From Convolutriloba macropyga (taxonomy: Eukaryota): 64,000 bases of DNA. The translations under genes were made by a program, and so were the position numbers. The notes below the pieces were generated by a model. The model worked only from the letters and a program-made list of their open reading frames with translations, had not been told where the DNA came from and made no database searches. Position 1 is the first letter of the stretch. The number at the start of each line of letters is the position of its first letter. The stretch spans positions 16,802,001 through 16,866,000 of the forward strand of contig NC_134471.1 in the NCBI RefSeq assembly GCF_964194025.1, written 5' to 3'. This document shows, piece by piece, positions 22,821 through 53,106 of this stretch.

Positions 22821-23432
22821 AGTTTTAGCGTCAAAAGACACTCCCTGTCGCGTCTAAAGGTACACTTCGTGAAATCTAGTCAATGGCGTTTATAAATTTT
22901 TGACTTGATCTATTTCAAAGAACGGCATGGTTAAATAATGAAAGCACAGCATCGTGCTATGATTGGATTAACTGAGTAGCTTAGGCCTTGTCTGAATTCG
23001 AGAGCTGTTTATTCCGTGCAATCTTTAAATGAAAGGTGTTGAATGCTACCTACGAAAGAGAGACGTGGTTGCTGTTTTGTGATGGAAAATGCTGTTTCGA
23101 TAATAAAAATTTTTAATGAAGACAAAAAGCGAAGTTTTTGGGGAATCATTTTTAAACACTGCGTTTATAATTCATTTAGTTTTCTGTGGGTGTTGAAATA
23201 TATTGACTCAATGTTTTACCAAGTTCACAGCCGTTTTTTCAAAACCATGTATTATAAAATTTGTATATGAGCTTTAGAAATAAAAACGGACAAATTTGTT
23301 CATGGGGGGGGGGGGGGGGGGGGCATCAAATTCGGGCCATTTTTTAAATCCTGTAATGCAACTATTGTTATTCCAATAGAATATTACCCGAGATTAGTTT
23401 GAATCTGTGGGTCCATTAATTTAAGGCAGTGA

Positions 23433-25298
23433 ATGACCGATAGGGTGGACGGAAATGTTGAGGTGACTACTGACATGAAGTCGCCCAAGACAGTCAAAAT
23501 CGGTAGCGAAGATGACATTAAAAGTAGCACTGAAATTTCAGCCGCGCACAGCGAGCCAGGGATTTGCGATGGCTCGAACGGCGTGTCATCTAATGGTAGT
23601 TTAGAAGTTAGTGAACTGCTTGAAACAAACGTCTCGGATGTCTGTAAAACAGATATTGCAGAACCTCGCGAAGTTATCGATGTTCTAGATGATACGCAGC
23701 AATCTTTAAGTTTAAGTTGTCCCTTGCCCGAGGACTCCGCCGCAGGTCTGTCCAAACGTCAGGTTAGGAAACGGAAGAAGTTTGAAAAACATCTGGAGCA
23801 AAGAAAAGCGAAGCGTGTGGAAGAGAAAGCGAGACAAAAAGAGAAAAACCGCAAAATTGCTGAAGAAACTGGTCAAACAGTTCGAATGAAGCGTGAATAT
23901 TTTAAAGGTGCCTTAGAAAGAAGTGTGGATATTAATATTGTTTTTGATTTGAGTTTTTCGGAGTTGATGTCGATAAAAGATCTCCACAAAGTTGTCCAAC
24001 AGATTCAGAGGTGTTACTCGGTCAATAGAGCCAGTCCGAAACCACTTAAAATACACTTGGCAGGTCTCGATGAGAAGGGAAAGGAAGCGTTCAAGCATTC
24101 GGTCCCTGGATACGAAGGATGGCAGGTTTCTACAATAACGGACGAGTCGTACGCTGATCATTTCAAAATGCAAGTAATTATAGCATACTGTTTCAAAACC
24201 CGATAATGATGCTGTATAGCATTTCAATAAGAATGTTCATTTCTCATTTGAAGCTGTTTGATAGGGAATGGGATATTAGGCGAAGGCTCGATTAGGCGAG
24301 GCGAATTTTTTAAGCCATTAGGCGAAAATTTTATAACTTTTTTGTAGAAATTAGAAGAAAAGCAATTAAAGCTCTTAAAAACGATAAAATGTGCTGAATG
24401 CTACAAAGTACTCAAGTGTCCCCAGCAATTGTCTTTATCTAAGTTTTTAAGTCTAAATTTTTATCTAAATTTTTACACCCCTTAAAAAAATTCTTCGCTC
24501 CTTCTGCAGTAATTTTTAACAAAATCCTCTTCTCGGATATTGCTGCTGAGGGTTCTAAAAATGATGTAACAACTCGAAGAATAGTACTTTTCACATGTTT
24601 TTATGAAATCATTATCACGTAAAGACAATTGCTGGGGACACTTCAGTACTTGGTAGCTTTGAGCACTATTTGAAGTATCGTCTTTAAGAGCTTTAACTAT
24701 GGTTTTCTTCTAATTTCCAGAAAAAGTTAGAGAATTTACGCCTAATGGTTACAAAAATTAACTTCGCCCAATATCCCTTCGGTATAGACCAAAATTGATT
24801 AAAATAATGATGATTTCTCGTTTTTGTGTTTTTGGGTATGCAAATTTTTCAATAAAATAATTCAACTTTTCTTCATTGTAGGTTGAGACAAAAAAGTTGT
24901 TTTACTTGACTGCCGAATCAGATAAATGCATGAGTAGTCTTGAACTGGGAACCTATTACGTAATCGGTGGCTTAGTCGACCATAATTCTCTAAAAGGACA
25001 CTGTCATAATCTGGCCAATGAAAAGTCAGTACCAACTATGCGACTACCAATATCTGAACACATAGATTTGAAAACGAGACACGTTTTGACAATAAACCAC
25101 GTGTTCGAGATTCTCTTAGCTTTAAATAACCAAGATGATGAAAGTGCCGGAGGATGGAAGGAGGCGTTGACTACTGTCATTCCTCAACGTAAAGGTCTCC
25201 AAGCTAAATCAGATTCATTGGAAGCAACAAAAAACAATGTAGCAGAGAAGGCCGAGGAAGAAGCAGCTAATGATGTCGAAGCGCCCAACTTACAGTAG
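23433..25298 (+). CDS. TRMT10A: tRNA (guanine-9-N1)-methyltransferase TRM10 homolog A; exons 23433-24173 and 24882-25298
   Basis: LSKRQ..K-rich N-term, IVFDLSFSELMSIKDL..VVQQIQRCYSVNR, FYLTAES, YYVIGGLVDHN..KG, RLPISEHI..RHVLTINHVFEIL, WKEAL..VIPQRKG; phase-0 GT-AG intron. A vs B/C paralog assigned from motif recall. Confidence 0.9.
24263..24780. mobile_element. MITE/foldback element in TRMT10A intron
   Basis: Long imperfect inverted arms: gggatattaggcgaag...ccattaggcgaaaatt...aagtgtccccagcaattgtcttta vs taaagacaattgctggggacactt...aatttacgcctaatgg...cttcgcccaatatccc; related copy at ~62247-62500. Confidence 0.8.
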
Positions 25299-25647
25299 AA
25301 ACTCGGACTCCGGAGCAGATGTTACGTAATTATGGTGATGCGACTTGATCAGTTGTTGCTCATTATGAAGCACGGTTTTCTTCGACGTGTAATACCGTGA
25401 CAGGACCCCGTTCTAAACGCTATACCGTTGACTCTCTTGACATTGTTGGTATGCAAAAATTTGTATGCGGAGTTGTCTATGGAAATATTTTTTTGTTCAG
25501 TTAAATTTTTGAACTGTATTCTTTTCTGCATCATTTAATTAATCCCACATAATTTTATTGACTTAAAGTTGATAGATTTTGCATGATTTTTAAGAACCAG
25601 ATGTGATGACAATTGCCATAATAGTAGTCTTATTTTTTCAGGGAAAA

Positions 25648-26550
25648 ATGGTCTCCGCAGGTACTGATGATTGTGAGCGTTTTTCTGTCAAAAACAAAAG
25701 GTTTCCCAAAGTAACCAAATTTGAATCGGCTGATAACCTTGAAGATAACTTTGCGCTGGAACCAGCCCTTGAAGATTTTGGAAGCGAATCTGAAGATGTT
25801 CACCCGTCTAATGCCAAATTGACTGTAAAATGTCAGAAAACAGCGCCTGAACAAAACAACTACAATTCCAGAAAAGGGGGCGAAGGAGAAATTAAAAAAA
25901 AGAAAAAGAAGCCCAAATTCAAGAGACGAAAAATTACGGAAGATTTGTCGATAATTAATTCGACAACTCTTTCTAAATCAGACAGCTTTATAGCCGTTTA
26001 TCAGAAGTTTTTGGTCGATCAAAATTTATCAAGTATTGAAACTGATGAGTTAAAAATGGAACAATCATTTTTCAGTGATGTTACTGATCGGACCAAAGAG
26101 ACCCGTATCGAAGATTTTTTAACCACAGGGTTGCATTGGTCACCCAGATTTTGCCAACCGAGAATTAAGAGTGCATATATTGTGATTGTTTGCTCTGCAG
26201 CAATGCGATGTATTGAGTTGATTAACAGTCTACGGCGCTCAGAAACACAATCGAAGGCGCACGTATCCAAAATGTTCTCTTCTCATATGAAAATATCAGA
26301 TCAAGCTGCTGAGCTGAACAAAAGTTTGGTTCACATTTGTGTTGGGACGCCTGCAAGGCTCACAAAATTAGTTGAAGAAAAGCATTTAGCCTTAGACTGG
26401 TGCAAATATTTGATAATTGACTATAATTGGAGAAATTCAAAATGGAAACGTATCGTTGACATTCCGGAGACAAATGTAGAACTGATGAAATTTGTGTTTT
26501 TGTTTCGGAAGGGTTTCAATGAAGCTAAAAATTCAATTGCTATATTCTGA
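25648..26550 (+). CDS. CMSS1: CMS1 ribosomal small subunit homolog (U3-containing 90S pre-ribosome factor), intronless
   Basis: ADNLEDNF N-term motif, K-rich tract, IVIVCSAAMRCIELI, VSKMFSSHMKI..Q, HICVGTPARLTKLV, LIIDYNWRNSKWKRIVDIPE match CMSS1/Cms1; ATG at 25648 follows tattttttcag. Confidence 0.9.
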   Translation: MVSAGTDDCERFSVKNKRFPKVTKFESADNLEDNFALEPALEDFGSESEDVHPSNAKLTVKCQKTAPEQNNYNSRKGGEGEIKKKKKKPKFKRRKITEDLSIINSTTLSKSDSFIAVYQKFLVDQNLSSIETDELKMEQSFFSDVTDRTKETRIEDFLTTGLHWSPRFCQPRIKSAYIVIVCSAAMRCIELINSLRRSETQSKAHVSKMFSSHMKISDQAAELNKSLVHICVGTPARLTKLVEEKHLALDWCKYLIIDYNWRNSKWKRIVDIPETNVELMKFVFLFRKGFNEAKNSIAIF

Positions 26551-27909
26551 ATGTTTGTAATTGACTGATAAAATTTTGTCAATACAAATTTTTGTTTAAA
26601 AAATAGATCAGATTGTATTCGGTGGCTTAGATCTAGTGAGCGGTTTTGGTTGGAAATGGAATGAAGCTTAGACTTGCTTCAGGAAATTCACAGCCTTCAA
26701 AATTTGTTGGGTTTGCGATCAGAGAGAAATGGAACTAAAAGAAAATAACGATTGTTCGAAATCCTGTGCAACTTTTCTGTGTTAATATTAAAAAAATAAT
26801 TTAACTCAGGAATCATATCGATCGCGAAAAATCATCTGTGAATATCCAATCCAGATTTTTTTCGAAACAATTGAAATAATACCTTCGCAAAATGTTTCAG
26901 AATGAAAATTAATGAGTTGCTGGCGATTAAAAATACTGATTCAACAAACCTTGGTACTTAAACGTCTAGAAGCCAGCCATTGAATTTGTACAACAGACCT
27001 GCCAATTGATGAAAAACTGTAAGCTTTGGTAATTATTTGGTTTGACGAATCAGAAAAGTTAAACTTATTCAGTTTGTATTAAGTATTGTTTTTGGTTGCC
27101 TATGTGTTGAAAAAGTAGGTTGCATATATTGTAACAAGACGGCTCAATTGATCCTGCTTGTGGCATGTTTCACAATTGATTAAGAATCTGACTTAAAAAA
27201 TGTAGATATTTGGAAATCCCAAAATAAATATTTAAAGGTTTTCTAACGTTTTTCACTAGTGGTGATTATTCTTTGGTCAGAACATTGGTTAGATATTCAA
27301 TAACCTTTCATGACGTCATTTGAAGCTTTATTGGATTTAGTTACTCCACCCTCCCCCGACTGATGCAGGTTGCAATAGATTTGAGTTCCAATTGTGCGTT
27401 GAAGAGAAATTCTTTCGATGTTAGTCGGTTATGTTTGTCTATATTGTTCTGCATTGTAATTTTGTTGATATGATGACAACGAAAATTGAAAAAGTGTTGC
27501 GTGATAGTTTTCCATTTGGCCTTGATAAATTAAAACTTCAGTAGCTCTCTACTTTAGATAAATTAATTGTTTTCTAAAAGTCCAACACGTACTTTTGAAT
27601 TAATGTTTTTGTGTTATTTGTCCACTTTAACTGGGTTTATATTAATTTATAATGAGAATATTAAATCCGCCCTATTTAAAACTTCTCCCCCCTCGAATCA
27701 TCCCCTATTTAAAACTATTGTTGATTTCTGTTTGGCTATCAAGTTCATTTCAGAAACTTTGGGTTAAATTTTAAGAATTAAAAAAATTATGTAGCAAATT
27801 ACTTTGCTCGCTTAGGCACGCCATATTTATTGCAAAAATGAGTCCCACCAGAAAAACTTTGCAAACCTAAAAGGAAAGTTTAGCAAACCTAAAAGGAAAC
27901 TTGGAAAAC

Positions 27910-29260
27910 TCAACGAAGAGGCTCGCTAATGTGCAATGGTACATAATGCTGCAACCTCGCTGATCTACATTTTCCGTTTAGTTGTCTACCAAATGAAGCC
28001 GAGATAAATAAATAGATAAAGTTTTGTTGTTTAATTTTTAATCGATTCTTGAAAAAGACGGACGTGCATACAAAAAAGGGGTCAATATCAATGAGAAAAA
28101 CTTCACTTTTCAATAGAATGAACCATTGAAAAATGAAACGACAAAAATGAAATCAACACTAATATATTTTCAAGCAAAAAAAATCAATCAAGTAAACAAT
28201 TAATTTGTCCAAACAAGAGGTGATATCCAGAAATCAATCTAAATTCCGTTTTAAAACCAAATTACCAACATTGGCTAAAGTAACAACCTGGTTATCAGCA
28301 AGCTTGCAAGGCCAATATTTAATTTTGGTCAGTTTTATATTCTCAATTTAGGTTGGTAAGTGTTCAGAAGTCAATAAAATGTGAGATAATCACGAGTTTA
28401 GCATGGTTAAAATAAGTAAACATAAATTTATTAAACATAATAAATTAATGTCTTCCTATGGAACTTATCAAGTGATTGAGCTAATAAAATGGTTTAACAT
28501 ATGCAAAAAAAATGAACAGAAAAAAAAGGCGAAAAAGAGACAAGTAATATGACAATAATGGAACGTTTGATCCAAACCAAAAACATATTGAAAATCAATT
28601 GCGTTTGAATAGCGTCTGATAGCGTCCAAAGTAGCAAAAGCCTCAAAGATATATTGAAAACGTTAACCATTTCCTACTTCGTCCTTGGAAACAAAAAATC
28701 AATTCATAGGTACAGTAAGCGAGAAAGTGACAACACTTACACCAATGCAAATGAATAACTGCAATTTTAAGGCGTAAATCTGGAAAATAATTAAACTTAA
28801 AAGAAATTTTCTTTCAGTATAATTAGCTAAAAATTGGAATCTTTATCTAATTTGGTTTATGCTCAGTCTCAAGGCTGACCAAACTTGTTTTTATTGAGAC
28901 AAGTCTACGACAAACAAAAACTTGGCAAATCGCCAAAAGTTCACTTTTAATTTAAACAGAAAAGAAATTCAAAAACAAAAAACTTTATTTTTTGGTCATG
29001 TCTTTCAGAAAAAGGCTACTTCTTTTTATTGCGGTTAGTTTGCAATTCAACGAAAAGCAATACTGAGGGGCCAAATCTTAACGTTGTTTGTAGCAAAAGT
29101 TAGAAGTAGTTAGCTACCAGAAATTTAAAACACGTGAACGGCTTCAAAGTTTGAACTTATATAACCTGAGTATGTCAATCAAACTTGACAAAAATTGGCC
29201 CAGGTGAGATAAAAGTAGAAAAATCCAAATATAATCAAAATACAGAGTATTAGCTAAGCT
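27910..29260 (-). mobile_element. Degenerate family A element fragment, reverse orientation
   Basis: 27910-28010 resembles 53107-53200 (reverse family A 3' end plus ttgtctaccaaatgaagc.gagata); local A-rich skew; far boundary approximate. Confidence 0.45.
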
Positions 29261-29299
29261 TCACTTTTTGTTCTTTTTCTACCTCTGAGGACTTAAGGT

Positions 29300-29413
29300 T
29301 AGAGGGCAAGACAAGACAACGAAATTGACCTCAAAAATGACAAGAAAAATGGTCAGAACTCAAACTTGATGACTTTTTGTCATTTTTCAGGTCACTTTTG
29401 TTGTCTTGCCCTT
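29300..29413. repeat. Short palindromic MITE-like element
   Basis: agggcaagacaa...tgacct.aaaaatgacaa vs ttgtcattttt.aggtca...ttgtcttgccct. Confidence 0.6.
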
Positions 29414-29498
29414 CAATTGGTGTTAGTGTTGTCATTTTAGTTGTTGTCAATAGTGTTTCGCCCATTTTTTGTTCTCAATGTTTTTTTATTGACGTCTA

Positions 29499-29942
29499 AA
29501 TGAACTATACAATGTTTTCAGTTAATAGTTTATGGTATTGTTTATTTTGGAACTATGTTTTTAGTTTTTTTTAAAAATAGATGACTAATTGCTGTTATTT
29601 TGTTCTGTAGTTTTATCGGAGTCTGAGTATTGAGCAGTTCTAATTATTGCTTTAGTGTCATAAGTGATGCTATTAATTGTTAGAGTTCATAGGAAAATGT
29701 TTTTTTGAAAGCAATTAGTGTAAGAGTCATAAAAACTATTTTCAATGAACTCAAACAATTAGTAGCGTCAATTATGACACTATGGCAGTCCGTGGGACTT
29801 TTTAAAATTCAGACTGGGATAAAACCACAGACAAAAATAAAAACACTTATAGCCAAAACAAAAAAAACCTTTTCAACGAAGGCATATTTTCAAAGTAATC
29901 AATACCATAAACTATTAACTGAAAACATTGTGTAAGTTCATT
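29499..29942. mobile_element. ~445 bp foldback (palindromic MITE)
   Basis: aatgaactatacaatgttttcagttaatagtttatggtattg vs caataccataaactattaactgaaaacattgtgtaagttcatt; inner arms gtgtcataa..gagttcat / atgaactc..ttatgacac also pair. Confidence 0.8.
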
Positions 29943-30086
29943 GAGCCAGTCCTATATATCTGCTCCACAGATTCATGTGAATGGTTAATTAACTGCTTTT
30001 AAAAGGCAAGTAATACTTTGTTGATCGAACAAAGCTGAATTTTTTAAATTTTTTTCAGATTGTTTGTTAGGTTCGACCCATTTACT

Positions 30087-31577
30087 ATGAAGTCAGTCTT
30101 TGAAGAGTCTTTGATCATGCCGGGAAGAGCGGCGGAGAAGCACCAGATTTTCGTATCACTTATAACTCCAATCAACCTCGTCACAGTTGCATGTTCAAAT
30201 TTGTGTTTTCTATACAAACGCGTATCTAAACACGCTGGCGAAGAAGCCGTCCAAAAAATGGGATGTTTACGACTCGAGTCCTCGAAGGTTTTCACATCTC
30301 AACTCGTATTGGATTCTTTTAATAAGAGAATTCTGGCAATTCTGAATAAAAACGAAATTGTCTCGTGGAGCTTGGACGAGGAAAAAGAGCTAACTCCTAA
30401 TGCAGAAAATGTTTCAATTTTTAAAGCTAAAAGCCTGCAAAAATTGATAGCTTTATTCAGTGTCGGAAATGATGTCACAATTCTGACGGAAGACGGAGAT
30501 TTGTTCAACTTGGCAAGGGCAGACGTCACGTTCTCGATTCCTGCGAAAGGTCGGGGACAATTAAAAATGGCGGAAATGTGCCAACTTGAAGTTGATGATG
30601 GAAATATCAAACCGTATCTGATAGCATGTTTTATAATGAAAGGCAACAAATCATGCTTAACTATACACTATCTCAACGCGAAAAATGTGAAGAAATCGGA
30701 ATTTATTCACAGCGTAATTTACAAATCTCAAATTGAAGATTTAAGCCTCCCAAAAATTGTTTATGCTGGGGCTATAAACGTAGAGTTAAAATTTGCGTTG
30801 AGTTTGGAAAATGGCGATTCGAAAATATACGACCTGAAAACAGGTTGGGAGTTGAAAACTTGTCCGTTTCAAGTCAAGGCAGTTTTGAGTTCTGACAAAT
30901 TTGTATGTCACTCGAAGGATAAACTCTTTACATGGTGTGAGCCCTTAAACCATGTCATGTCATCATGTGAGATGAAAAATTTGAAAGCTGTTTGCGCTGA
31001 TCAGCACTTAATTGCCGTGATCTTTTCTGATAATGCGACAACCGAACTTAAATTGTTTTCGAATATGGCGAACCAAATTACAACAACTGTATCGGAAATT
31101 GCTTCGAATGATGAAATAGCTGGCTCATTTCTTGCGTTCAAAGGCGACGAAATTTTCAATTCTTTGTGTCAGGTTTTGAGAAAAGAAATAGGCCTCTCTG
31201 AGACTATTTGGCATGGATTTGAACAGAAATTAAAAGTTGCGATTTCAAGAAACTTTAACGCTGAACAAGTTAAAACGTTGTTCGAACTGTGTGTTTTGAA
31301 TTATGAAACCGAGAACATTGAGCTACGATCTTTTGTTTTGACAATTTGTGATCTACTGCTTCTCTCACAACGTGACGTCATTATAGAGTTGCTTAGTGTC
31401 GCTGGCCAGTCAGAATTCAGATCTAACTTTATAACAATCTGCGATCGAGTAACGAAAGATCTTAAACGACACGAGGCTATCGTGGACTGTATGAATACAT
31501 ATGATGATTTAGCGGCCATGTATAGCTCTAAACCTGTTGATGATCCTGGTTTCTACATAACTTATTTGGATATATGA
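30087..31577 (+). CDS. NOL11: 496-aa intronless protein, probable divergent nucleolar protein 11 (NOL11-like, t-UTP/UTP-A component)
   Basis: Long clean ORF; N-term CFLYKRVS..QKMGCLRLESSKVFTSQLVLD...ILAILNKNEIVSW..IFKAK..IALFSV..VTILTEDG aligns by eye with recalled NOL11 [30 protein letters not shown]...YVVVHDNKVLRIW..VFKAT..VYRILSV..PLVLFKEG; C-term GFYITYLDI resembles YSIEVLELF. Gene is likely real; name is tentative. Confidence 0.65.
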   Translation: MKSVFEESLIMPGRAAEKHQIFVSLITPINLVTVACSNLCFLYKRVSKHAGEEAVQKMGCLRLESSKVFTSQLVLDSFNKRILAILNKNEIVSWSLDEEKELTPNAENVSIFKAKSLQKLIALFSVGNDVTILTEDGDLFNLARADVTFSIPAKGRGQLKMAEMCQLEVDDGNIKPYLIACFIMKGNKSCLTIHYLNAKNVKKSEFIHSVIYKSQIEDLSLPKIVYAGAINVELKFALSLENGDSKIYDLKTGWELKTCPFQVKAVLSSDKFVCHSKDKLFTWCEPLNHVMSSCEMKNLKAVCADQHLIAVIFSDNATTELKLFSNMANQITTTVSEIASNDEIAGSFLAFKGDEIFNSLCQVLRKEIGLSETIWHGFEQKLKVAISRNFNAEQVKTLFELCVLNYETENIELRSFVLTICDLLLLSQRDVIIELLSVAGQSEFRSNFITICDRVTKDLKRHEAIVDCMNTYDDLAAMYSSKPVDDPGFYITYLDI

Positions 31578-33264: not shown

Positions 33265-36200
33265 AAGCTCACAAGTGATGGGTCCTATTGGCTTCCTAAT
33301 TAGCTCGAAATTAATTTATCTAGATTGCTTGAAAGCTTATGGTCGTTTTGACTTTTAAAATAATTGATTTTTAAAAAATGGCTTATTGAACTTTGCCTCC
33401 ATTGTTCTCTTAATTTGGTCAACTTGTAGCTTAGTGTCAATAATCAAAGAGTGCTCCTTCTTTCTGCTGAATTCAAATGTTGTCTTTATTGCGGTTTTAC
33501 GCCTTAAGTTATGGTGTTCTGGCTTTGATACTACTAGATTTCAATTCTTTTTAGTTTTCAGGTATTTGCCCATTTTTCATGTTTTCTAGTTTTGTCAAAT
33601 TATCACGTTATTGTCCGTCCATATATCACATTTTTCGTGTTTAAAATAACGCACAATTGATAATATTTAAATCCTTAAAGATATAGATTGTGGTTATTTA
33701 CCGCTTCGACAGTACTTTCTCGAAGAATTTAATTAAATTTTTTTAATTTTGCCTTTAACTGTCATTTTTACTTTGTCTTTTTATACGTATTTAATTTCCT
33801 GTACAATGACACGGTTTGATTGGCTTTTTCTGGAAGAGTAGATGAGCTGATGTTCTGATATTAGAAGATAGATATTGGCTTTCATGACTTTGAAAACAAT
33901 TGTTTTCCAAAATGAAAAAAAAAAATTCAACTTGGCAATTTTGTTCCTTTTATTGTCTGTTTGTTACCTGGTCTCGTTAATTAAAGGTTAAAGATGACAT
34001 TATCTTTGTCAAGGAAAGGTGTCAAAAGGATTGGTGTCACAAAATCTAATGTTTTAAGAGAATTCGTTGTGACTTTACTGGCTTCCACACGGGTTTTTCA
34101 CAAATAAAAGTAAACGAATTTTTGTTTTTTGTCATATTTGACGTTCTTTTTGTAAAAGTAAGACATATTCTGGATAATTGCAGGTCTCAAGGGCTTCCTT
34201 TGGAAGAATGGACGAACCTATTCAAATTTTTCATCTTGTAATTAATGGCTTTTATGTCTTTGGAAATTAATTTTTTTTCGAAAAAAAACAAGTTACATAA
34301 TTTTGCATTTTTTTTCTTTTTTGACTAATTGTTGCTTATTTTCATTAATGAGCGGCCACATAATACATTGTCGGTGTTCAACAAAGTTGCAATCGAACAT
34401 ATTTTGGGGGCCAAAGTATGGCTTTACGGCTTCCAAAGCATTTTCTGGCAAGTTTTAATTGATTTTTAGTTTGTTGTCTATTTGTTGTTCTTTTTGTAAC
34501 TGCATAGAAAATTGAAAACCAAGTGTTCTTAATTCCCTTCTATAGAAGCAGTGGTAATTGTAAACCTATGGGATATTTTAGTTGATTCCTAATGGTTTTC
34601 ATTACTTTGAAATTAATTGTTTTTTTTTTAATAAAATTCAGCGAATTTTTTAACTTTGAAGTTTCTGTTCTTTTTTATCTAATTGTTACCAAGCTTTGTT
34701 ATGAACTGGTGAATAACCATTTTTTTCTGGTGTATTACAAGTTCGTTTGTTTATTTTCAGTTTTATCTGACGCTATTTTGACTTTGTTATTAAGTTTTGT
34801 TTTTTAAAACGGACAGAAATTTTTTGATGTAATTAATGTTTGTTGTTGTTGTTTGATTTTGCCGTTCGTCTCCGCTCGCTTTCTTAATATCGGCATATGT
34901 CGTCAATCCAATGCATCATTTTTTACTCCATTGAAGCTCACAAGTGATGGGTCCTATTGGCTTCCTAATTAGCTCGAAATTAATTTATCTAGATTGCTTG
35001 AAAGCTTATGGTCCTTTTGACTTTTAAAATATTTGATTTTTAAATAAAAAATGGCTTATTGAACTTTGCCTCCATTGTTCTCTTAATTTGGTCAACTTGT
35101 AGCTTAGTGTCAGCAATCAAAGAGTGCTCCTTCTTTCTGCTGAATTCAAATGTTGTCTTTATTGCGGTTTTACGCCTTAAGTTATGGTGTTCTGGCTTTG
35201 ATACTACTAGATTTCAATTTTTTTTTAATTTTCAGGTATTTGCCCATTTTTCATGTTTTCTAGTTTTGTCAAATTATCACGTTATTGTCCGTCCATATAT
35301 CACATTTTTCGTGTTTAAAATAACTCACAATTGATAATATTTAAATCCTTAAAGATATAGATTGTGGTTCTTTACCGCTTCGACAGTACTTTCTCGAAGA
35401 AATTAATTGAATTTTTTAATTTTGCCTTTAACTGTCATTTTTACTGTCTTTTTAAACGTATTTAATTTCCTGTACAATGACACGGTTTGATTTTTTTTTT
35501 CGGAAGAGTAGATAAGCCGATGTTCTGATATTAGAAGATAGATATTGGCTTTCATGACTTTGAAAACAATTGTTTTCCAAAATGAAAAAAAAAAATCAAC
35601 TTGGCAATTTTGTTCCTTTTGTCTGTTTGTTACCTGGTCTCGTTAATTAAAGGTTAAAGATGGCATTATCTTTGTCAGGGGAAGGTGTCAAAAGGATTGG
35701 TGTCACAAAATCTAATGTTTTAAGAGAGTTTGTTATGACTTTACTGGCTTCCACACGGGTTTTTCACAAATAAAAGTAAACGAATTTTTGTTTTGTCATA
35801 TTTGACGTTCTTTTTGTAGAAGTAAGACATATTCTGGATAATTGCAGGTCTCAAGGGCTTCCTTTGGAAGAATGGACGAACCTATTCAAATTTTTCATTT
35901 TGTAATTAATGGCTTTTATGTCTTTGGAAATTATTTTTTTTTTCGAAAAAAAACAAGTTACATAATTTTGCATTTTTTTTCTTTTTTGTCTAATTGTTGC
36001 TTATTTTCATTAATGAGCGGCCACATAATACATTGTCGGTGTTCAACAAAGTTGCAATCGAACATATTTTGGGGGCCAAAGTATGGCTTTACGGCTTCCA
36101 AAGCATTTTCTGGCAAGTTTTAATTGATTTTTAGTTTGTTTATTTGTTGTTCTTTTTGTAACTGCATAGAAAATTGAAAACCAAGTGTTCTTAATTCCCT

Positions 36201-36593
36201 TCTATAGAAGCAGTGGTAATTGTAAACCTATGGGATATTTTAGTTGATTCCTAATGGTTTTCATTACTTTGAAATTAATTGTTTTTTTTAATAAAATTCA
36301 GCGAATTTTTTAACTTTGAAGTTTCTGTTCTTTTTTATCTAATTGTTACCAAGCTTTATTATGAACTGGTGAATAACCATTTTTTTCTGGTGTATTACAA
36401 GTTCGTTTGTTTATTTTCAGTTTTATCTGACGCTATTTTGACTTTGTTATTAAGTTTTGTTTTTTAAAACGGACAGAAATTTTTTGATGTAATTAATGTT
36501 TGTTGTTGTTGTTTGATTTTGCCGTTCGTCTCCGCTCGCTTTCTTAATATCGGCATATGTCGTCAATCTAATGCATCATTTTTTACTCCATTG
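33265..36593. repeat. Tandem duplication of ~1.66 kb (33265-34933, 34934-36593)
   Basis: aagctcacaagtgatgggtcc at 33265 and 34934; both end ttttactccattg; duplicated ORFs 33386/35059 and 34592/36279. Confidence 0.95.
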
Positions 36594-42325: not shown

Positions 42326-42573
42326 NNNNNNNNNNNNNNNNNNNNNNNNNNNNNNNNNNNNNNNNNNNNNNNNNNNNNNNNNNNNNNNNNNNNNNNNNNN
42401 NNNNNNNNNNNNNNNNNNNNNNNNNNNNNNNNNNNNNNNNNNNNNNNNNNNNNNNNNNNNNNNNNNNNNNNNNNNNNNNNNNNNNNNNNNNNNNNNNNNN
42501 NNNNNNNNNNNNNNNNNNNNNNNNNNNNNNNNNNNNNNNNNNNNNNNNNNNNNNNNNNNNNNNNNNNNNNNNN
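42326..42573. other. Assembly gap (248 N)
   Basis: Run of N. Confidence 1.
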
Positions 42574-45500
42574 CCGGCCTATAAACCAAATACACAAAGA
42601 AGGATAATCAAAACACGACATAAATCACAATCAAACATCGAAAAATATATGCATTTAATATATCCAACAATCAAATTAAAATTTATTCAAGGTTATTTTA
42701 GGCTGGGAAAGGACGCGCAACGAGGTCCCTAGACCTACTTTCCAGCGTGCCCTGTAATATAAACGTTGGAGTGGATCAACTTAATTTTTTTTTCAATCTA
42801 ATATTCTTGCCATTTTGTAAATGATTTCTTTGTTAGCAACCTTTTAACTGCTCGAAATTACTGCTCCACCAGAGCCCGGAGATAAGTACTTAAACTACAT
42901 CGAATTGAAACTTGTTTACAGCAGAGAGCAACGTTGCAAGTTAAAAATTGTTTTGTCAAATGGTCCTATGAAGGAGGAAAAAGTGACAAAAACTGTCTGT
43001 AGAAATTGAAAATGATTTTTGACAGCAGACATCGAATCGCGGTGCCTTCTACAAAGGCACCGCACAAATGTTTGCGTATACTTTTCAATTAATTTCAAGG
43101 AATTACCAGGAGTTGCAGGGATGTGACAAATTATCCAAAAAACACATTTGAATGAGTTCATAATTCTCTTGTATATATGAGTCCTTCAAGTTATTAGAGA
43201 TATCAGAGACTTGCTTAATGGTTGCATTTCCTACATAGTCAGGTATGAGAAATTGTATTTTCAACATATTAAACAATTTGGAAGCTCGGTGACAAATCGA
43301 GTTTCGATTCATTTTAGTTTTGCACAATGGAACTATCAGTAGCATCAAATCAGCGCGTCTAGTTGAATGAGTGCAACTTTCGAACTGAAAAATAGTATTG
43401 AGATAATTCTCGGAATGCATATGATTTAATGACTTCAAAACGAATCTTAGTAGTTCATAGATATGCAATTCGAACACAGTTAGTATCTTATTAGCCCTAA
43501 ACAAATCTTCACTATCATCATGACGTTTTCTGAAGTATATTACTTTGATTATTTTCTTTTGCAATTGATAAATCGGATAAATGGATGAGAAGCTACAACA
43601 CCCGTAAACAAGAATATCATATTGGATAATTGGGTATACCACATTCCTATAGTATTCATTCAATTGGTGACGCGAAAATTGTCTTAATTTGGATATTACA
43701 CCGCATTGTCGTCCAAGACGTTCAGTAACGGAACTTATATGAGCGTGGTAGGAGAGCTTTGAATTAATTTTCAATCCTAGATACTTACATTCATGGTCGT
43801 TTTTTATAAGACTAGATGCAAAATTAAACCTGAGACTGGAAGCACTTGCTTTTGTACTAATTTGAAACGTTTTACTGAAATTCAGCTTAAGTTTATTTGC
43901 ATTTAACCATCTTGCTACATTGTCAAGGTCTGTTTGAACATCTGATCTGGAGCAGTCTAATCCACATAAATTTGTATCGTCAGCAAACAGATACACACTA
44001 ACATGATTACAGGCTTTAGGTAAATCATTGATATAAATGAGGAACAACAAAGGTCCAGGAATGGAACCCCGAGGAGGAACACCACAAGTGATAATTAACC
44101 AATTGGATGATATTCCAGATAAGGTTACTCTTTGTGATCTACCACATAGGTAGCTATGGAACCATTTCCATCAATTATGGCGTATACCGTACCGTTCCAA
44201 CTTGTGGAGCAAATTTTCATGATCTAGTGTATCGAAAGCCTTTTTCAGATCCAGAAAGAAACTAACTGTCTCAGATTTACTTGATCTTATCCGTTCTGTG
44301 AGTTCAGCTAGGGCATCAATAGTTGAATGTTTTTTACGGAAACCAAACTGTTTAAAATACAAAAGATCAAAACCTTACAGATATTCGTTTACTCTCGTGA
44401 ACATCGCGCGCTCATATATTTTGCTCAAGACATTCAAAAGAGAAATTGGCCTATAATTATTCTCTTCTACACGTGATCCGTTTTTCAAAAGTGGAAAAAC
44501 GTTAGCTTTTTTGAGATCAGAGGTGAAAGATCCTTCGTAAAATGATACATTTATCCATGATGTAAGGTATTTGGTAATCACTGATCCCGCAGTCTTAACC
44601 AATATATTACTTATTTCGTCTTCACCTGATGACGATTTATTGGGAAGAGAGTTAATAATATCAATCGCTTGTGTTTCAGACACTGGGTTCATTCCTATTG
44701 ACATGTTTACATCACTAGGAAGTTCGATTGTCTCTGAAGGAATACTGTGCTTAATGTTTTCTTCAATGCTAACAAAAAAACTTCTCAGCTACTTCAAAGG
44801 TTGACGGATTAGGCTTGGTGTCTGATATACACGAAGCCAATTTAATAAAGCTATTATTCGGTCGGGTTTTTCCTGATGATTCGTTGAAAAGAGCGAACGT
44901 CTTTCTTGAGTCTCCTAAACAATTATCAAACATATTTTTATAGTAAATCCGCTTCGCTGATTTGACATTTTTTTCAAAACGAATTCGAATTTCTTTGAAC
45001 CTATATAGCAAAGGTAAATTAGATGGGTCTCTTTTCCATTTACTATGAGCCCGGTTGCGTTCAGAACGTAAATTCTTCAGCTTATTGTCAAACCATTTAG
45101 ACGTTAGGTTCTTTTTGCTCGGATTTATTTGTTTAAATGGAGCATAGTGCTCGGTAACCGCCAAGAAAACTTCATAGAAAGCAGTGAAGGAAGAAATACC
45201 ACTGTTCGATAATTTGGAAAAAGTTTTGTCACTCAAAACGAATAAATATTTTTCTACAAAACTTGGATAACGTAAAAAAGATGTATCTCTTACTATTTTG
45301 CTTTCATCTTCCGTATTTATTATAGCCCGTCTGAGCAAAACGGGATAATGGTCAGAGAAACTCTGATGATCTAAAATCTCAGTCTGCAACTAAATTTTGA
45401 TAGAAATGATCGATGCAAGTTGCTGAGCTATTTGTGACCCGGGTTGGTTCACTAGGTGTTATGCTGAAGCCATTTGAATGAATGGAATTTATGTATTTTC

Positions 45501-46910
45501 GGGTTAACAGATTGTTCTTCAAGATATTTATATTAAAATCTCCACCGATTACTGTTTTTTTTGAGCTAATGTTTCCCATAATTTGTCTAAGATTTCAGTG
45601 AATGCAATTTCGTTTGCCCTTGGTTTATTGTATTTTATCATTAATCATTTATTAAGTAGCCTTTTTTATCTACGTTAACAGACAATGACTCTTCAATGTC
45701 GCAATCAAGCACTTTTTGGAAGGAACAATTGTTTCTAGTTTCAATCATAAATCCACCACCTTTTGAGTCACCAACTTTCGATAAAAGATTCTGATAACCA
45801 GTAACTGAAAACGGTTTTGGATCGTCTTTTTCGGAAAGCCAGGTTTCTGTTAAACAATGTATGTCAGGAGGAGACTCAAGACTATACGCAAGTGCTTCCA
45901 GGTCCTCAAGGTGTTTTTTCAATGAGCGAACATTTAGATTTAGAACAATAAGTGAACTACAAGACATTGAAGCTTTGTTTTTAGGTGTATTCAATGGGCG
46001 AAGAGGTGGGAAAAATATTGCTGCGAGATGGTCGGAAACATTTCATAAATTCCGAAAAGTCATAATTCAGATTTCTGGCAGCGTCCAGTAAATCCAGCAC
46101 CCTGTATATTTTTATTTTCCTTCCACAGATAAAGAATTGTTCCCTCTCGTGTCCACGCTGACTCCACAAGAGAATCTCTCTTCATCATGGAAAGAAATTT
46201 GGCACTAGCAGGTGAAACATCTTCAAATATTTTTACGCTGTTAGTATTCGCTGATAACTTCTTGTTTCTTAAAATATCAGTCTTCACGACTCTACGGGAA
46301 AATCGAGCGATTATTGTACGCTCACCCACTTTGCCTCCTGGCAGTCTGTGGGCAGTCGAAATATCCCTCTCGTCAATTGCCACTACCAACGATGACGCGA
46401 CTTCAATAACCTTAATTATAACAGTGCCTTTTTCAGGTATAATAGCCCCATTGTCAATCTGTTCGACGTCTTCCTTCAAACCAATGATTCTTATATTCTC
46501 TCTCCTATTGTAATTTTCTATACTTTCAGCTTGAGACATCGCTGCAGCATTGTAACGTTCTTCTTGGTAGTATAAGGCGCCCTCAACTTGTCGAAGAATT
46601 TCGGTCTTTAGTTCTTCCTTGATTTGCTCAACAACCTGATTTGCTCAACAACAGCGCTTGGAATAGCCGCCTGAATTTCACTTCTTACTTGAGAGATTAA
46701 TTCATTTCGCCTTTGGCTGATACAGGTAGGAATGAAGATGTTGATCCGACTTTCAAACATCTTGTCAATTTTCGAGAGGAAATTTTCTTCATCAAAGCTT
46801 TCTGCTATTGGACTTGAGTCTGGTTTGGATCGTTTAGCGTCTTGCTTCCAAAGATAAAGCGACCAATTTTTGACGGTCAAGTTCAAGATCAGCTACAAAG
46901 TTGTTTTCAG
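42574..46910 (-). mobile_element. Near full-length decayed non-LTR retrotransposon (CR1/L2/Crack-like): ORF1, APE endonuclease, RT, 3' UTR
   Basis: ORF1 IENYNRRENIRIIGL..DISTAHRL..IFEDVS..SAWTREG (46060-46886); APE LNVRSL..CLTETWL, GGDFNI, TCIDH, SDHYPV (44769-45994); RT NYRPISLL, QFGFRK, FLDLKKAFDT, LFLIYINDL, LFADDT, KYLG (43103-44704); many frameshifts. Confidence 0.93.
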
Positions 46911-46939
46911 GTAGAGAAGATAATTCAGTGAGAAGATAA

Positions 46940-47130: not shown

Positions 47131-47486
47131 TTGATTTTGAGTTTTTTGGCAAAAAAAGTATGAAGGCTCGCCATACTTATTTGGGAGAAAAATACTTATA
47201 AATTTGCAAGATTGTAATTGGGGTGACGTGAAAACAAGCGTGAAAGTTTGAACAAAACGTACACGTGAAGTGTTGAGAGAGAAAGCCTCAGAATTAGTGA
47301 CTGAGCGCGGCCAATTTGTTGCGTTTTATTTGCAGTAAAGTGGGGGTCTAATCATGTTTTTCTGTATACTTCAGGTTTTAATGTACATTTAATAGTTTTT
47401 GCTCTCTTACGGGTGTGAAATGAACTAAGTTAAATACAATCTTCCTGTCTGTCTCTGAGTGTCAGCCCTTTTTGGTTTGATTCGGA

Positions 47487-50400
47487 ATGCCGGCAGAATA
47501 TGGCGATGTGGAGTTCTTTGACGGAAGTGTTGGTATGTACACAATATCCCTACTAACCAAGGAGCAGAGGGGTAAAAAGGACCCTCTATGGGGCAGTGGA
47601 CTGGTAGTCACAAATCCGGACGTGGTCCAGCAGATGCACAGGGAGTACATAATGGCTGGATCTAGTGTGGTATCGACCTGTACCTATCAGGCGTCGCTGG
47701 ATCTCTACTGCCAAGAATTCAATATTGAGAGAGACGAGGCTTGTCAGAAGTTGGCCGACGCGGTTGTTATTGCCCGGAATTGTTTTGATGAAAAAGGTTA
47801 GCTGTAATTTCGGAACTTTTCCCTAATGAACAAAATTTTTGCTTACATAAGAATTTTGGAACAAACTAATGAACGTTTGATTTGTTATGCTTAGGTTGTA
47901 TAGTTTCATAGGAGGCGCGACATCGGGGAACCATTCGGAAAATAATTGAGATTATCATTTAACAGTGAAATAAGTTGCTAAATCAAGTTATGTAAATGTG
48001 ACAAGATTTAACGTTTGGGTACCTGTTAATGCGCGTCTATTACGTTTTTCTCACCCTCACTCGCCCCTTTTGTGCACCTCCCCTTTGGCCGAAGCCTCAG
48101 GTATTTAGTCATCAGACCTTTAGAGGAATGAATTCCAAGTCATGAAGACCAGAGCATCGGTGCTAAGACCATCTGGGGTCTAACTCTTTGAGGAGTCGAG
48201 TCCCGTGAGCCTCAAGTCTCCTTAAAACCATCTTTCGGGACTTAGCAGAGCATGTGTTGTCTGGACCAAACATGTAGTGTAGTCACTCTTTATCTTTTAG
48301 CTCTGCGATCACAGTTGCAACACTACTCTGTGATGTTATTTCTGTGACTACCACTACATCTATCTTGTCTGGACCTTACACAGTATTTCCTACTAGAGGA
48401 CTTTCATTTCAGATAGTTGTTGTGCGCAGGGATCACACACAGTTTTCTCATCCACTACTTATCAACGTTCAGTGAATACAGTGTAGCATTCATCTCAAGT
48501 TCCCTCACATCTCAACCATACTAACCTTGCGTTCGTTGCCTACTAACAAAGATTTCTGGTCGATTAGAGTTCGCAAGAGACTTACATTGGAGTCTAGCCA
48601 ATTCACTACTAAACGATCAAAACCTCATCTACTAGTCTCGATTTCACTTTCGTTACTTTGTTGACTTTCGAATCAGTTATCTTTGACCATCTATCGCATA
48701 TTGGAGACATTTCCAACAGTTGAAGTCAGCGAGACATGACTACAAGAGCCACTTTTGTTCACAGGGTCCCGCCAACAACCACTTTGGCTCCCTTCTTTCA
48801 AGGGCGCTATTCCGAGCTCTGCCTCAACTCCTTCATCTCAGGCTCATGCCTGCGCTGATGAGTATCGGGCTGACAAGGAATTCACAGCAAATTTATTTTG
48901 AGTCCAGGGTGGCTTGCTTAGGGCACACTCCTCAGACTATCTGCTTAGCTAACTTCCACTAACTGAGCTAGCAGTAGTTACCCGGGGGCACCGCGAGGAG
49001 GTTACAGATCACGTCTACACCCTGGGTTACTAACCCTCCCCACAAGGTTTTCGCCTCAGCATTGTGCTTCCATGTCCCCCCGCCCCTTTTGTAAGTTTTG
49101 TGACACTACGTATGAAGTCATTATATAACGATTGAGCGTGAGCTTGGAGCTGCATTTTATGTGACCCGGTAAGCATGGACGGGGAGTTTGTAAAAAGTTT
49201 CAAGTTTGAATAATCAATGATAGATTGTAATTTTATTTAATAGTGCTTAATTTGCTTTTTGTTGCTACATGCTAGGAAAACTTATGACCCCCCAGTTAAA
49301 AGTTATGTGTTGTTATATAGCTTGTTACTATGTAAAAATAATGTATGTGCGCCTGGGAGTCATAAAGCATATATTCCCACTAAGCTGGGGGGGGGGGGGG
49401 GGGCAGAATAGATCCGAAAAAATAAGTATAATTGTTTGCAGATAAAGATCGGGAGAGGAATTTCAAGGTTGCAGCAAGCATTGGCAGTTTTGGTGCTCAC
49501 CTGTGCGATATGTCTGAGTACACAGGTTCCTTTGCCCCCAATTACTCCATTGATGACATGATCACATGGCACAAGGAGATGGTGACTGCATTTACCAAAA
49601 CATCCCCAGGTGCGTGAAGTTTAAATGTTTGAACTCCTTAACTTAAAGCTTGAGTATTTCAATGTGACTATTGAAGATTTTTTTAGAAGAATATACAAGG
49701 ACAATTATTAATTTATCCAGGATTATTTCCGTTACTGTCTGTACGTCGTGTTGCATCTCACAGTCCTATAGCAGCTGCCTTTGCATAGTAAACACACTTA
49801 TGTTAACATATCTCGCAGGTTGCAATTAATAGCACCCACTCAACGGGGGGGGGGGGGGGGGGGGTTTGTCTCAAACTGAAAACACTTATGTATCTTTTAA
49901 GAAATATTTTTTTCGGTATCTGTTTTCCAAACAATTTTTGTGACCGAAGCAACTATTTTTAATTGCTCTCAAACCAAATTGCAGCAATTATACATATTAG
50001 TACCGTGGTCTTTTTCATGCGATTGTTCTGTTGACCGATTTTTCGTCTGACCCTTCAGACTTTTCGTCCTCAAAAACGGAATAAACAGGCAACTCCCAGA
50101 TGGCATTAAGTTCGGCGTACTAGGCTCTGAGTAGGGGATTTATCAAAATTGTTTTGGAGAAATAAATTCATGAGTTCCACTAAAAGCACTTTAGCATTTT
50201 TGACTTGTTTGGACTCAATTCTGCTCAGATATCAGTTAACAATATTAACTGTAAACAAGGAAAGTAGTAGTTTTGGAACCGTCGGTTGAGTTTATAAGTA
50301 TCAGTTTCAAGCCTTCAGAATAAGTAGTTTTTCAAGTTCAGTACAGGTTTTACAGGTGCATATTATTTGCCATGTGCAGGGTTTCTACATATTGTAGTCT

Positions 50401-53042
50401 TCAACTAACAGTTTCCAGTATATATCGCTCAATCTCTTACCCCATAGTTGTGGTTCTACATTTAGAACTTTCTTGAAGATGCTTGCCAGGCGTTTCGCTC
50501 TTGCGTAGAAGTTACTGTCAGTCTTTTGTAGTCTCGTTTTCGGCACTATAAATTCTGCTCGTGTTCCTTGTGTTGTGTTTTCGTTCAAATAGGAAAAGTT
50601 ATCCGCGTTTGCATCATTTTTTCCTGCAGAATCGTTACGAGTTAAGCATGTCATGTAGTTCGAGATATTAGGTGATCGGGAGCCGTTCGAGTTGTTTCAG
50701 CCTTTCTTTTTATGTCTTTTCGCTGCCCATTATCCACTTCGTAGCGCTTTTTGGCGAAAGTTCAAGTTCTTTCTGCTGGGTTCTATTTGGAGACCAAGCT
50801 TGAGAACCATACACCAGGGTTTGAACAACGTAGCCATTATATGCGTTCAGGCGAGTTTTGAGCATGCATGATTTCGAGAGGTTTCTTGTCTGATGAAGCG
50901 CTGATGTGGCTTTCTTAGTTTTGGTGGCAATTATCAGTCCAGTTTAGGTTGCTTGCAACAACCAAGGTTTTTCTGGGCTGGCTGACATGCTACTAGTTCA
51001 CCGTTGATTGACGCCTGTAGATTGCCTTTGAAGTTTAACAGGTTTCATTTTTGGACATTAAGAACCATTTGGTTTTCTTCACACCAAAGTTCAATAGCAG
51101 TCGCACATTCGTCAAGTTCACATTTCGAACTCACTATAATCTTAAAATCATCCACATAGCCGAAACTATTGCACTCCTTTAATCTTTCTTGAAGTTCGTT
51201 AATAAACACCAAGAACATCAGGGGACCTAGACTGGATTCTTGTGGAACTTCGCTTGTGACATTGCTGACGTCAGATTTCCGACCAGATATAGAGACTAAT
51301 TGTTTTCTGTTCGAGAGATAAGACAAACTCAAGTTTCTCTTAAACCTGAGTCTTCCGGTTTTGTGAGCAGTCGGTTGTGTGGTACCTTGTCAAACGTCTT
51401 CGCAAAGTCTAAGTGCAGTACACTCAGTTCCGTAGATGATGGATCGTCCAACTGACTGCATAAAACATCGAAAAAGGTTATTAATTGTAGTGTTTCAGAT
51501 ACAGCTTTGCGAAAACCAAGCAGGTTTGGATGCAACTGGTTTCCTAGTTAACTGTAGAGTAACTCGAAGATTACTTTTTCAAACTTTGGAGACATTACAG
51601 AGCAGGCTGATTGGTCCGTAGTTCTCGATATCCATTCGGTCACCATCCTTATATATAGGGGTCACGTTTGCTTTTTTCCAGAGATCGAGTTACAGTCTTT
51701 TGTTGACCATGGTTGGAAACAGTAATTTCAAAGACTTTGCAAGGGATCCACAGTAAGGGTTCACAAACAACACTTATACTATATATAACTTTGAATTTAA
51801 AGCAAAACTGCCATATAGTTATCGGATATTGAAGTAATGAATTTATAAAGTTTATATAATTATTGATATACATTCATGAAAACTTGCATTTTAAATCGCT
51901 CTCAAACAATGTTTAACAATGTTTTGCAATATTATTTTAGTTTGGTCGGTTTTTATGTAATTTTTTTTGTTTGACCGTCTTTCGTCTGATTGATTTGACT
52001 GTCAAAAAAACGGTGTGAGTTGGTAGAGCCCGAGGGCTCTGAGTATAATGAGAAGAATTGTAGTTCTGTAGATTCATGCTACTGTTCACCGAAAGTACTG
52101 AAGAGGCATTGTTTCATACTGTTAAGCACAATTTTGAGAGGTTTGCACAACCCACCCAGCTAAACCAGCCTCTTAGCTCAAGATAGCTACCGTCAAATCC
52201 AGTATCAACCCCTTGCCAGTAGTTTGAGGATTTATCTGTCCTTAGTCGGTTAGGTTCATTTTTCTGAGATATTGTTGAATGCATGAAACACGGAAGCGCT
52301 TTGGTATATAATTTTGGCTTTTATGGGAAAATTATTGACATTAATTTTGGCTTTTATGGGAAAAGTATATTATGGAAAAATTATTATGGGAGTTTGCAAC
52401 GAAAACTACGCATTAACTAAAGATGTTTGCAAACATACACAGATATATTTGGAACTCAAAACTCTCAAGCTAAGTTTTGAATCAATAATAATAATGTTTA
52501 GATATAATGGGATTTGAAACTGTACCAGTGATCAAAGAGGTGCAGGCTATCATGACATTAATGAGTGAATTTTACCCCAAGCAGAAGTTCTACCTCTCTT
52601 TTGCCTGCAATTCGCCCACCACTCTAGGAAGTGGAGAGCCGTTTGTGGATGCCGTGAAAGAAATAATCAAATACAAAGAGCTCTGCAAAATTGCGGCCAT
52701 CGGTTGGTTACTCAATTCGAATACGTTCAAATTTGATTCGAACGAAAAGGGATTTTTTTATTTGAGCTGTGACAAAAATGGTCCTTCTATTGATTTTCAA
52801 GTACTTCCGTTACAAGTGGTGTCTTCTTATGGATCAGAAACAATTGATGGTGTATATCGTCAAGACCGACAGCGAGTATATATTCATTGAACTAAAATTT
52901 TGTTTACTTTTTTATGTGTCACTAACTTTGTCTTAACAGGTATCAACTGCAGTGCAGTGGAGAACACGACATCTTTGTTGCAATCGGCCAAAGATAGCAT
53001 TGAACAGTTGGCGCTCCCTATTCTCATTATGCCAAATTTGAG
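47487..53042 (+). CDS. Homocysteine S-methyltransferase family protein (HMT/MmuM-like), 3' incomplete; exons 47487-47796, 49442-49609, 52502-52702, 52940-53042
   Basis: FFDGSVG..DPLWGS..NPDVVQQMHREYIMAG..STCTYQAS; VAASIGSFGAHLCDMSEYTGSF; DIMGFETVPVIKEVQA..YLSFAC; IGINC..IMPN; GT-AG introns in phase. Terminal GGCC exon not seen. Confidence 0.88.
48085..49062. repeat. GC-richer ~1 kb insertion, possibly a solo LTR
   Basis: Compositionally distinct non-coding block in HMT intron 1; minus-strand AATAAA near 48893; cgccccttttgt occurs on both sides (48062, 49081); termini not resolved. Confidence 0.3.
50340..51650 (-). mobile_element. 5'-truncated decayed LINE (RT and 3' region) in HMT intron 2
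   Basis: LDFAKTFDKVPHNRLL, VPQESSLGPLMFLVFINEL, YVDDFK motifs across broken ORFs 51045-51535. Confidence 0.85.
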
Positions 53043-53106
53043 GTTAGCGACAAAGTACAGTTTTGTAAAAGTACAAAATTTATTAGTAAAGAAACCTGTA
53101 TTGAAA

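Follow-up and report, generated by a model that had tools for sequence, protein, structure and literature searches.

Are five consecutive, co-oriented genes on chromosome 4 of the acoel Convolutriloba macropyga transcribed together and then resolved into separate messages by spliced-leader (SL) trans-splicing--that is, do they form an operon--or are they independently transcribed neighbors? The stretch in question (contig NC_134471.1, 16,802,001-16,866,000, read on the + strand; this 64,000-nucleotide stretch, the whole of the DNA analyzed, is termed here the window, and positions are counted from its first letter) harbors TRMT10A, CMSS1, a gene for a 496-amino-acid (aa) protein, COPS5 and a homocysteine S-methyltransferase gene (HMT). 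SL trans-splicing and operons are distributed patchily across animal phyla and their origin is debated; acoels are placed either as the sister group to all other bilaterians or within the deuterostomes. The original prediction, made from the sequence, proposed an operon-like unit whose spacers had been inflated by transposons and whose genes each follow an unpaired splice acceptor. Here it is shown that two of these genes, CMSS1 and the 496-aa gene, receive a leader by SL trans-splicing at precisely those acceptors.

All five genes lie on the + strand, as judged from the list of open reading frames (ORFs) and from Pfam matches:

23433-25298, + strand: TRMT10A coding region, 385 aa; exons 23433-24173 and 24882-25298, both matching Pfam tRNA_m1G_MT
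25648-26550, + strand: CMSS1 coding region, 300 aa, single exon; Pfam CMS1, 7.7e-30
30087-31577, + strand: 496-aa gene (labeled NOL11-like in the original prediction), a clean single-exon ORF
38367-41122, + strand: COPS5 coding region, 381 aa; Pfam JAB and CSN5_C; an open GT-AG model of five exons, 38367-38615, 39044-39173, 39312-39459, 39803-40024 and 40726-41122
47487-53042, + strand: HMT; Pfam S-methyl_trans and tblastx to orthologues; approximate exons 47487-47796, 49453-49611, 52502-52702 and 52940-53042

The spliced two-exon model of TRMT10A stays open and in frame. The last recognizable HMT exon ends at 53042 and is followed by a GT donor (53042-53044), so that HMT extends further; neither tblastx nor Pfam found a terminal exon beyond that point. 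Six host genes on this strand had been claimed, of which these five stand; a sixth could not be identified by Pfam, which yields no match between 2.5 and 23.3 kb of the window. Rfam and tRNA scans of the window found nothing.

The evidence for leader joining comes from X5, a public set of contigs totaling 80 Mb, which stems from a different sample within the same study and came up with a query made of exons alone. No record lists X5 as RNA; it is taken to be a transcriptome on three grounds, namely its size, the fact that it covers exons only, and the leader at its contig ends. Over 24900-30899, where its contigs were compared with the DNA runs X1, X3 and X4, X5 covers exons only (24900-25234, which lies in exon 2 of TRMT10A; 25640-26566; and 30057 onward). 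The contig over CMSS1 fits the genome from 25640, and before this point it carries TTGTTGTGATAAACTTATTAAAT, that is, 23 nt of the 3' part of the leader; the contig over the 496-aa gene fits from 30057 and carries before it GTGATAAACTTATTAAAT, or 18 nt of the same part. Because the final AG of the leader overlaps the genomic AG, the joints fall between 25641 and 25642 and between 30058 and 30059. The SL-bearing ends occur in X5 only, the three DNA runs being colinear across both joints, and the leader has no match in the window with up to 3 mismatches. Both genes are thus trans-spliced, since X5 carries the leader where the DNA reads straight through. The original prediction had named a cis-spliced first exon of the 496-aa gene, with its donor GT at 30010, as a finding that would speak against it; this candidate was checked and rejected, inasmuch as the X5 contig bears the leader at its joint and shows no joint from 30010, so that cis-splicing is not what the assembled X5 RNA shows.

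A sequence check located all five proposed AG sites where they had been reported; those for COPS5 and HMT are read from the genomic letters only, and for HMT a second candidate is added:

23378-23379, + strand: TRMT10A candidate SL acceptor AG; the exon would begin at 23380, 53 nt before the ATG; poor pyrimidine tract
25640-25641, + strand: CMSS1 SL acceptor AG, proven by an X5 contig; 6 nt before the ATG
30057-30058, + strand: 496-aa gene SL acceptor AG, proven by an X5 contig
38340-38341, + strand: COPS5 candidate SL acceptor AG, 25 nt before the ATG
47373-47374 (AG, as originally proposed) and 47463-47465 (CAG), + strand: HMT acceptor candidates

We infer that TRMT10A, COPS5 and HMT are leader-spliced as well. 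Two environmental acoel transcripts (a JGI record, present also as Logan contigs) carry the full leader: a CMSS1 transcript (L015; protein 59% identical), in which it ends 6 nt before the ATG, and a TRMT10A transcript (L024; protein 64-69% identical), in which it ends 60 nt before the ATG. A search of the whole genome for retrocopies bearing the leader together with the first exon of TRMT10A, COPS5 or HMT found none, a result that is uninformative on those three sites.

Where does this leader come from? It is identical to the leader published for the acoel Symsagittifera roscoffensis (GCCTAATTGTTGTGATAAACTTATTAAATAG), in which SL trans-splicing was described in 2022 for 30.2% of genes, operons and conserved clusters not being mentioned (PMC9911081). 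The suggestion that trans-splicing might be undescribed in this lineage thus fails, the same leader having been published for an acoel; that C. macropyga uses it is the expected extension of a known system. The two species share the leader, the possession of many SL RNA genes and an acceptor just upstream of the coding sequence; they differ in that the linkage described below was read from the C. macropyga genome. The published leader, as a 32-nt string, has about 2,600 copies in that genome with up to 3 mismatches, versus none for a reversed control. Allowing at most 1 mismatch, 1,636 copies of the leader are followed by GT; these form tandem arrays in two regions of contig 9, 23.14-23.78 Mb and about 62.06-62.12 Mb. 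The unit examined in detail (in L022, which is C9:23192500-23196600) is 1.26 kb long, with spacings of about 1.06-1.8 kb elsewhere, and the examined units contain both an SL RNA gene and, on the opposite strand, a 5S rRNA gene scoring 114-120 bits. Such SL-5S linkage is a classic arrangement in other trans-splicing lineages. The SL RNA gene consists of the leader, GTAATT, then AAGUUUUAUUUGAA, then a GC-rich stem; its predicted fold (-30.2 kcal/mol, z = -3.8) places the donor inside a stem, after which come a single-stranded, U-rich, Sm-like stretch and a GC-rich hairpin. The genome search that had been proposed, for an SL RNA with an Sm site, has therefore been carried out with success, the Sm-like site being one predicted by folding.

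Two side observations concern the leader itself. Where A follows the leader, the copy lacks a donor and stands at the head of some other sequence; three of eight sampled donor-less copies (L001, L003 and L004, from 1501) continue identically (AGATGAGCCAGCGAGGCATG) and are leader-headed members of one repeat family. In both environmental transcripts (L015:1-46 and L024:1-46) a cDNA adaptor tail (ACATGGGGG) is followed by CTTTTA and only then by the published leader, and in the SL RNA gene of C. macropyga (L022:188-224) the leader comes after CTTTTA as well. Because the same six letters stand before it in transcripts and gene alike, the real leader may run to about 37 nt, with 6 nt more at the 5' end than in the published version.

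An operon does not follow from trans-splicing by itself. Relatives of CMSS1 and TRMT10A were sought in other ENA assemblies, and the loci found are labeled here species B, C and D and assembly E; in the first three the genes are again co-oriented:

Species D, co-oriented: TRM10, about 0.35 kb, CMSS1, 8 kb, 496-aa gene, about 0.35 kb, HMT; CMSS1 41% and 496-aa gene 24% identical
Species C, co-oriented: TRM10, 4.3 kb, CMSS1, 12 kb (with an antisense long interspersed nuclear element, LINE), 496-aa gene; CMSS1 41% identical
Species B, co-oriented: CMSS1, 2.9 kb, 496-aa gene (split by a 5-kb insertion), 0.9 kb, HMT; CMSS1 53% identical

The block orthologues in these three species are 24-54% identical at the protein level, and in all five species an AG acceptor lies 4-13 nt before the CMSS1 ATG. 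Judging from these comparisons, the order TRM10, CMSS1, 496-aa gene, HMT is old and has outlived a complete turnover of the spacers. COPS5 is found between the 496-aa gene and HMT in C. macropyga alone; in species B and D these two genes adjoin (at 0.9 and about 0.35 kb, respectively). Hence COPS5 entered the block on the C. macropyga lineage, facing the same way as its neighbors, and the adjacency of HMT to the 496-aa gene in two other acoels independently supports its belonging next to the cluster.

The 496-aa gene of species B contains (L010:15257-19365) a 4-kb array of ten overlapping, low-complexity sense-strand ORFs, which is either a large intron or an insertion and in which no real Pfam family and no retroelement domain was detected. 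In assembly E (L025:4588-11337) TRM10 ends a different co-oriented run, consisting of a ribosomal P protein (Ribosomal_60s), a GFO/IDH/MocA oxidoreductase, a 126-aa ORF and TRM10 itself, which may be another leader-type cluster.

The identity of the 496-aa protein finds no help in its earlier label. NOL11-like is unsupported: the protein has no Pfam match and no detectable similarity to NOL11_N or Nol11_C; a three-species profile matches no PDB entry and, among 1.84 billion proteins, retrieves only acoel-type relatives. In an atlas search a NOL11 cluster comes only at rank 19 (score 0.85). The AlphaFold model is poor (predicted local distance difference test, pLDDT, 44); the predicted fold, with a beta-rich N-terminal half and a helical C-terminal half, would be compatible with NOL11 and proves nothing.

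From these observations, a reading is preferred at somewhat below even confidence, namely that the locus is a conserved, co-oriented cluster of SL-spliced genes and a partial operon, in which TRMT10A and CMSS1 perhaps form a two-gene operon and the remaining genes have promoters of their own. Under this reading, SL RNA made from the roughly 1,600 gene copies in the 1.26-kb tandem repeats with 5S rRNA on chromosome 9 would supply a 31-nt leader (ending in AAATAG), to be joined at the AG acceptor that lies shortly before the start codon of each gene, and the RNA upstream of the acceptor would be discarded. If TRMT10A and CMSS1 are one operon, the leader would resolve them; the genes behind 3.5-6.8-kb repeat-filled spacers most likely would have promoters of their own and short outrons that are discarded. 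The block as a whole would be a relic of tighter ancestral pairs, because TRMT10A and CMSS1, and likewise the 496-aa gene and HMT, lie only about 0.3-0.4 kb apart in a distant acoel, and into this relic COPS5 would have been inserted in the prevailing orientation on the C. macropyga lineage.

The intercistronic distances are, in order, 349 bp, 3.5 kb, 6.8 kb and about 6.2 kb, the last including a gap of N; the first belongs to this spacer:

25299-25641, + strand: TRMT10A-CMSS1 spacer, 349 bp from stop codon to ATG

The TRMT10A-CMSS1 pair alone looks operon-like, because its short spacer shows neither AATAAA nor ATTAAA, the canonical poly(A) signals, the spacing is kept in species D and the acceptor lies at the ATG. 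Whether it truly is a two-gene operon is judged an even call. Several points weigh against the preferred reading. A promoter could fit into 349 bp, and co-transcription even of this pair is something that we infer; the leader joints in C. macropyga are seen at two of five acceptors, in a contig set whose RNA nature is drawn from its properties. In species C the TRM10-CMSS1 spacer is 4.3 kb, TRM10 was not found within 16 kb upstream of CMSS1 in species B, and CMSS1 was not found within 9.4 kb downstream of TRM10 in assembly E, whose locus has no overlap with the CMSS1 locus of species B; tight TRM10-CMSS1 linkage is therefore dispensable. The conservation of order in species B, C and D may be no greater than that of ordinary neighbors in these genomes. 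Lastly, no RNA is seen on the spacers: X5, whose contigs drop rare forms, has none on 25235-25639 or on 26700-29899, apart from a depth-3 piece of a high-copy repeat in the latter. Holes in contig data, however, prove nothing, and the one over the TRMT10A-CMSS1 spacer is uninformative, because the last 64 nt of the TRMT10A coding sequence, a polymorphic stretch, are uncovered as well.

The rival that survives best, and is quite possibly correct, holds that these are five independent transcription units, that the leader does nothing more than trim short outrons, its role for most trans-spliced genes in nematodes, and that gene order has stayed the same because rearrangement is slow. In S. roscoffensis about 30% of genes undergo trans-splicing, with no operon being claimed there (PMC9911081), and the long spacers here, of 3.5-6.8 kb, are full of repeats and show no RNA. 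The breaking of the TRM10-CMSS1 link in species B and assembly E and its stretching in C are likewise what independent units would allow. Moreover, putative promoter motifs can be picked out by eye: CCAAT-, E-box- and cAMP-response-element (CRE)-like motifs stand a short way before the HMT acceptor, and TATA-like strings precede both the 496-aa gene and COPS5. (The CpG observed/expected ratio is flat, at about 0.8-1.3 across the region, and there are no CpG islands, so that CpG is useless here as a promoter marker.) Against independence, a 349-bp gap is unusual for a 1.18-Gb genome, a gap below 0.5 kb persists in a species whose CMSS1 is no more than 41% identical, and four unrelated genes retain both order and orientation despite the complete turnover of their spacers.

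A second rival concerns the acceptors rather than the transcription units and is somewhat unlikely: at least one of the sites at 23379, 38341 and 47374 would not be an SL acceptor at all, HMT most likely using another AG (47465) or having a cis-spliced or unspliced 5' end, and TRMT10A perhaps using another nearby AG. By a simple pyrimidine-tract rule, acceptor-like sites occur on the + strand at 5.2 per kb, so that the chance of finding one within 10, 30, 60 or 120 nt upstream of any given point is 0.05, 0.15, 0.27 or 0.46, respectively; by sequence alone the five acceptors are therefore weak evidence, and only the CMSS1 site is individually unusual. In this rival's favor, chance often supplies such motifs (0.27-0.46 within 60-120 nt); the tract at 23379 is poor; and the AG at 47373-47374 would leave two upstream ATGs in a 112-nt untranslated region. 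The CAG at 47463-47465, which follows a long pyrimidine tract and lies 21 nt ahead of the ATG, is preferred as the better HMT candidate. Telling against this rival are the environmental TRMT10A orthologue, which is leader-spliced with an untranslated region of similar length, and the other acoel orthologues, in which an AG likewise lies close before the ATG. At 23304-23323, 55 nt upstream of the TRMT10A acceptor candidate, 20 G stand in a row, perhaps as a real homopolymer or perhaps as a long-read artefact.

The remaining rival is the whole-block operon of the original prediction, for which the contents of the longer spacers and of the HMT introns are most relevant:

33265-36581, no strand: tandem duplication of 1.67 kb, two copies 95-99% identical, in the 6.8-kb spacer between the 496-aa gene and COPS5
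42326-42573, no strand: assembly gap (N) in the non-coding COPS5-HMT spacer
43103-46886, - strand: non-long-terminal-repeat (non-LTR, LINE-like) retroelement remnant; Pfam RVT_1 at 43103-44050, with adjoining minus-strand ORFs to 46886
50385-51332, - strand: reverse-transcriptase fragment in an HMT intron; Pfam RVT_1, 1.5e-10, at 51045-51332

Because the N gap lies between COPS5 and HMT, their distance and continuity are only estimates; no gene frame crosses the gap, and the ORFs listed across it are artefacts of the N run. An antisense LTR-type element (with a gag-like DUF1759) lies within 53378-59848, probably inside an HMT intron. A homologue of the LINE in the COPS5-HMT spacer occurs, also antisense, in the spacer between CMSS1 and the 496-aa gene of species C. 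The observation that every coding retroelement is antisense has held up under Pfam: all four pieces in the window are on the - strand, which corresponds to p of about 0.06, one-sided.

If the block from TRMT10A to HMT, at least 30 kb, were a single polycistron with its promoter upstream of TRMT10A, its spacers transposon-inflated and its cistrons leader-resolved, then selection against sense-strand poly(A) signals would be expected to leave retroelements antisense, as they are in the window (four of four) and in the species C LINE; the co-orientation of the genes, at least two downstream genes of which accept the leader, the conservation of order across acoels while spacers vary from 0.35 to 12 kb, and the insertion of COPS5 in the same orientation would also fit. 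This is nonetheless improbable, given that X5 has nothing but the depth-3 repeat piece on 26.7-29.9 kb, that the spacers are 10-30 times longer than any citable operon definition, that the antisense bias rests on only 4-5 elements, that species B has its 4-kb ORF array on the sense strand inside the 496-aa gene, and that AATAAA strings follow both the 496-aa gene and COPS5. Strand composition skew was considered as a sign of read-through and dropped: A-rich retroelements lying antisense would produce it too, and in the spacer at 28-30 kb its sign is opposite.

Other repeats of the region are noted for completeness. A 1.09-kb unit is present in at least three tandem copies, 96-100% identical, at 18986-22166, the array stopping about 1.2 kb short of TRMT10A; on its minus strand each copy carries an ORF of 88 aa without a Pfam match. 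A short dispersed repeat occurs in one orientation in three spacers (27300-27500, 37183-37272 and about 41480-41520), with a word depth of 1,200-2,000 in the DNA runs versus about 40 around it, and often lies near a CRE-like string, ATGACGTCATTTGAAG (27310 and 41778).

How does the block compare with known operons? In Caenorhabditis elegans, polycistrons are resolved by SL2, nematode spacers are about 100 nt, and the first gene of an operon can itself be SL-spliced. The block resembles such operons in consisting of co-oriented housekeeping and RNA-processing genes, with a downstream gene that is trans-spliced just before its ATG and with a U-rich spacer. It differs in that no operon-specific second leader is seen, CMSS1 and the 496-aa gene sharing the leader end, and in that its spacers are 349 bp and then 3.5-6.8 kb rather than about 100 nt. 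In both nematodes and flatworms, moreover, SL1 outron trimming replaces the native 5' end of genes that have promoters of their own; this would fit the three widely spaced genes here, but would not itself explain why order and orientation have been kept across acoels. Another comparison is with the chaetognath Paraspadella gotoi, which has no operon-specific leader, whose operon genes are housekeeping genes and whose operons are called only where genes lie less than 250 bp apart, in a study that describes SL genes as often residing in ribosomal DNA clusters (PMC12460157). The acoel block shares with it the lack of an operon-specific leader and housekeeping genes, as well as SL genes associated with 5S rDNA; it differs in that no pair here is closer than 250 bp, only the first, at 349 bp, coming near that limit. 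A literature search found no published acoel or xenacoelomorph operon, and the sole paper on acoel trans-splicing that it found covers one species.

The broadest claim that could be made of this locus--that acoels possess true operons whose gene order is held for long periods while transposons inflate the spacers from about 0.35 to more than 10 kb--is a long shot. If it were true, RNA polymerase would traverse many kilobases of repeats, all of them antisense, each cistron would be rescued by the leader, and new genes, such as COPS5, could join just by landing in the right orientation. If there is no operon, the locus is a case of ordinary outron trimming combined with conserved microsynteny. 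What the locus adds is a second acoel species with two acceptors placed to the nucleotide, a leader shared by at least three acoels, and a block of four genes that has kept its order through the complete turnover of its spacers; this block thereby provides a concrete and cheap test case for operons in acoels, centered on a single 349-bp spacer.

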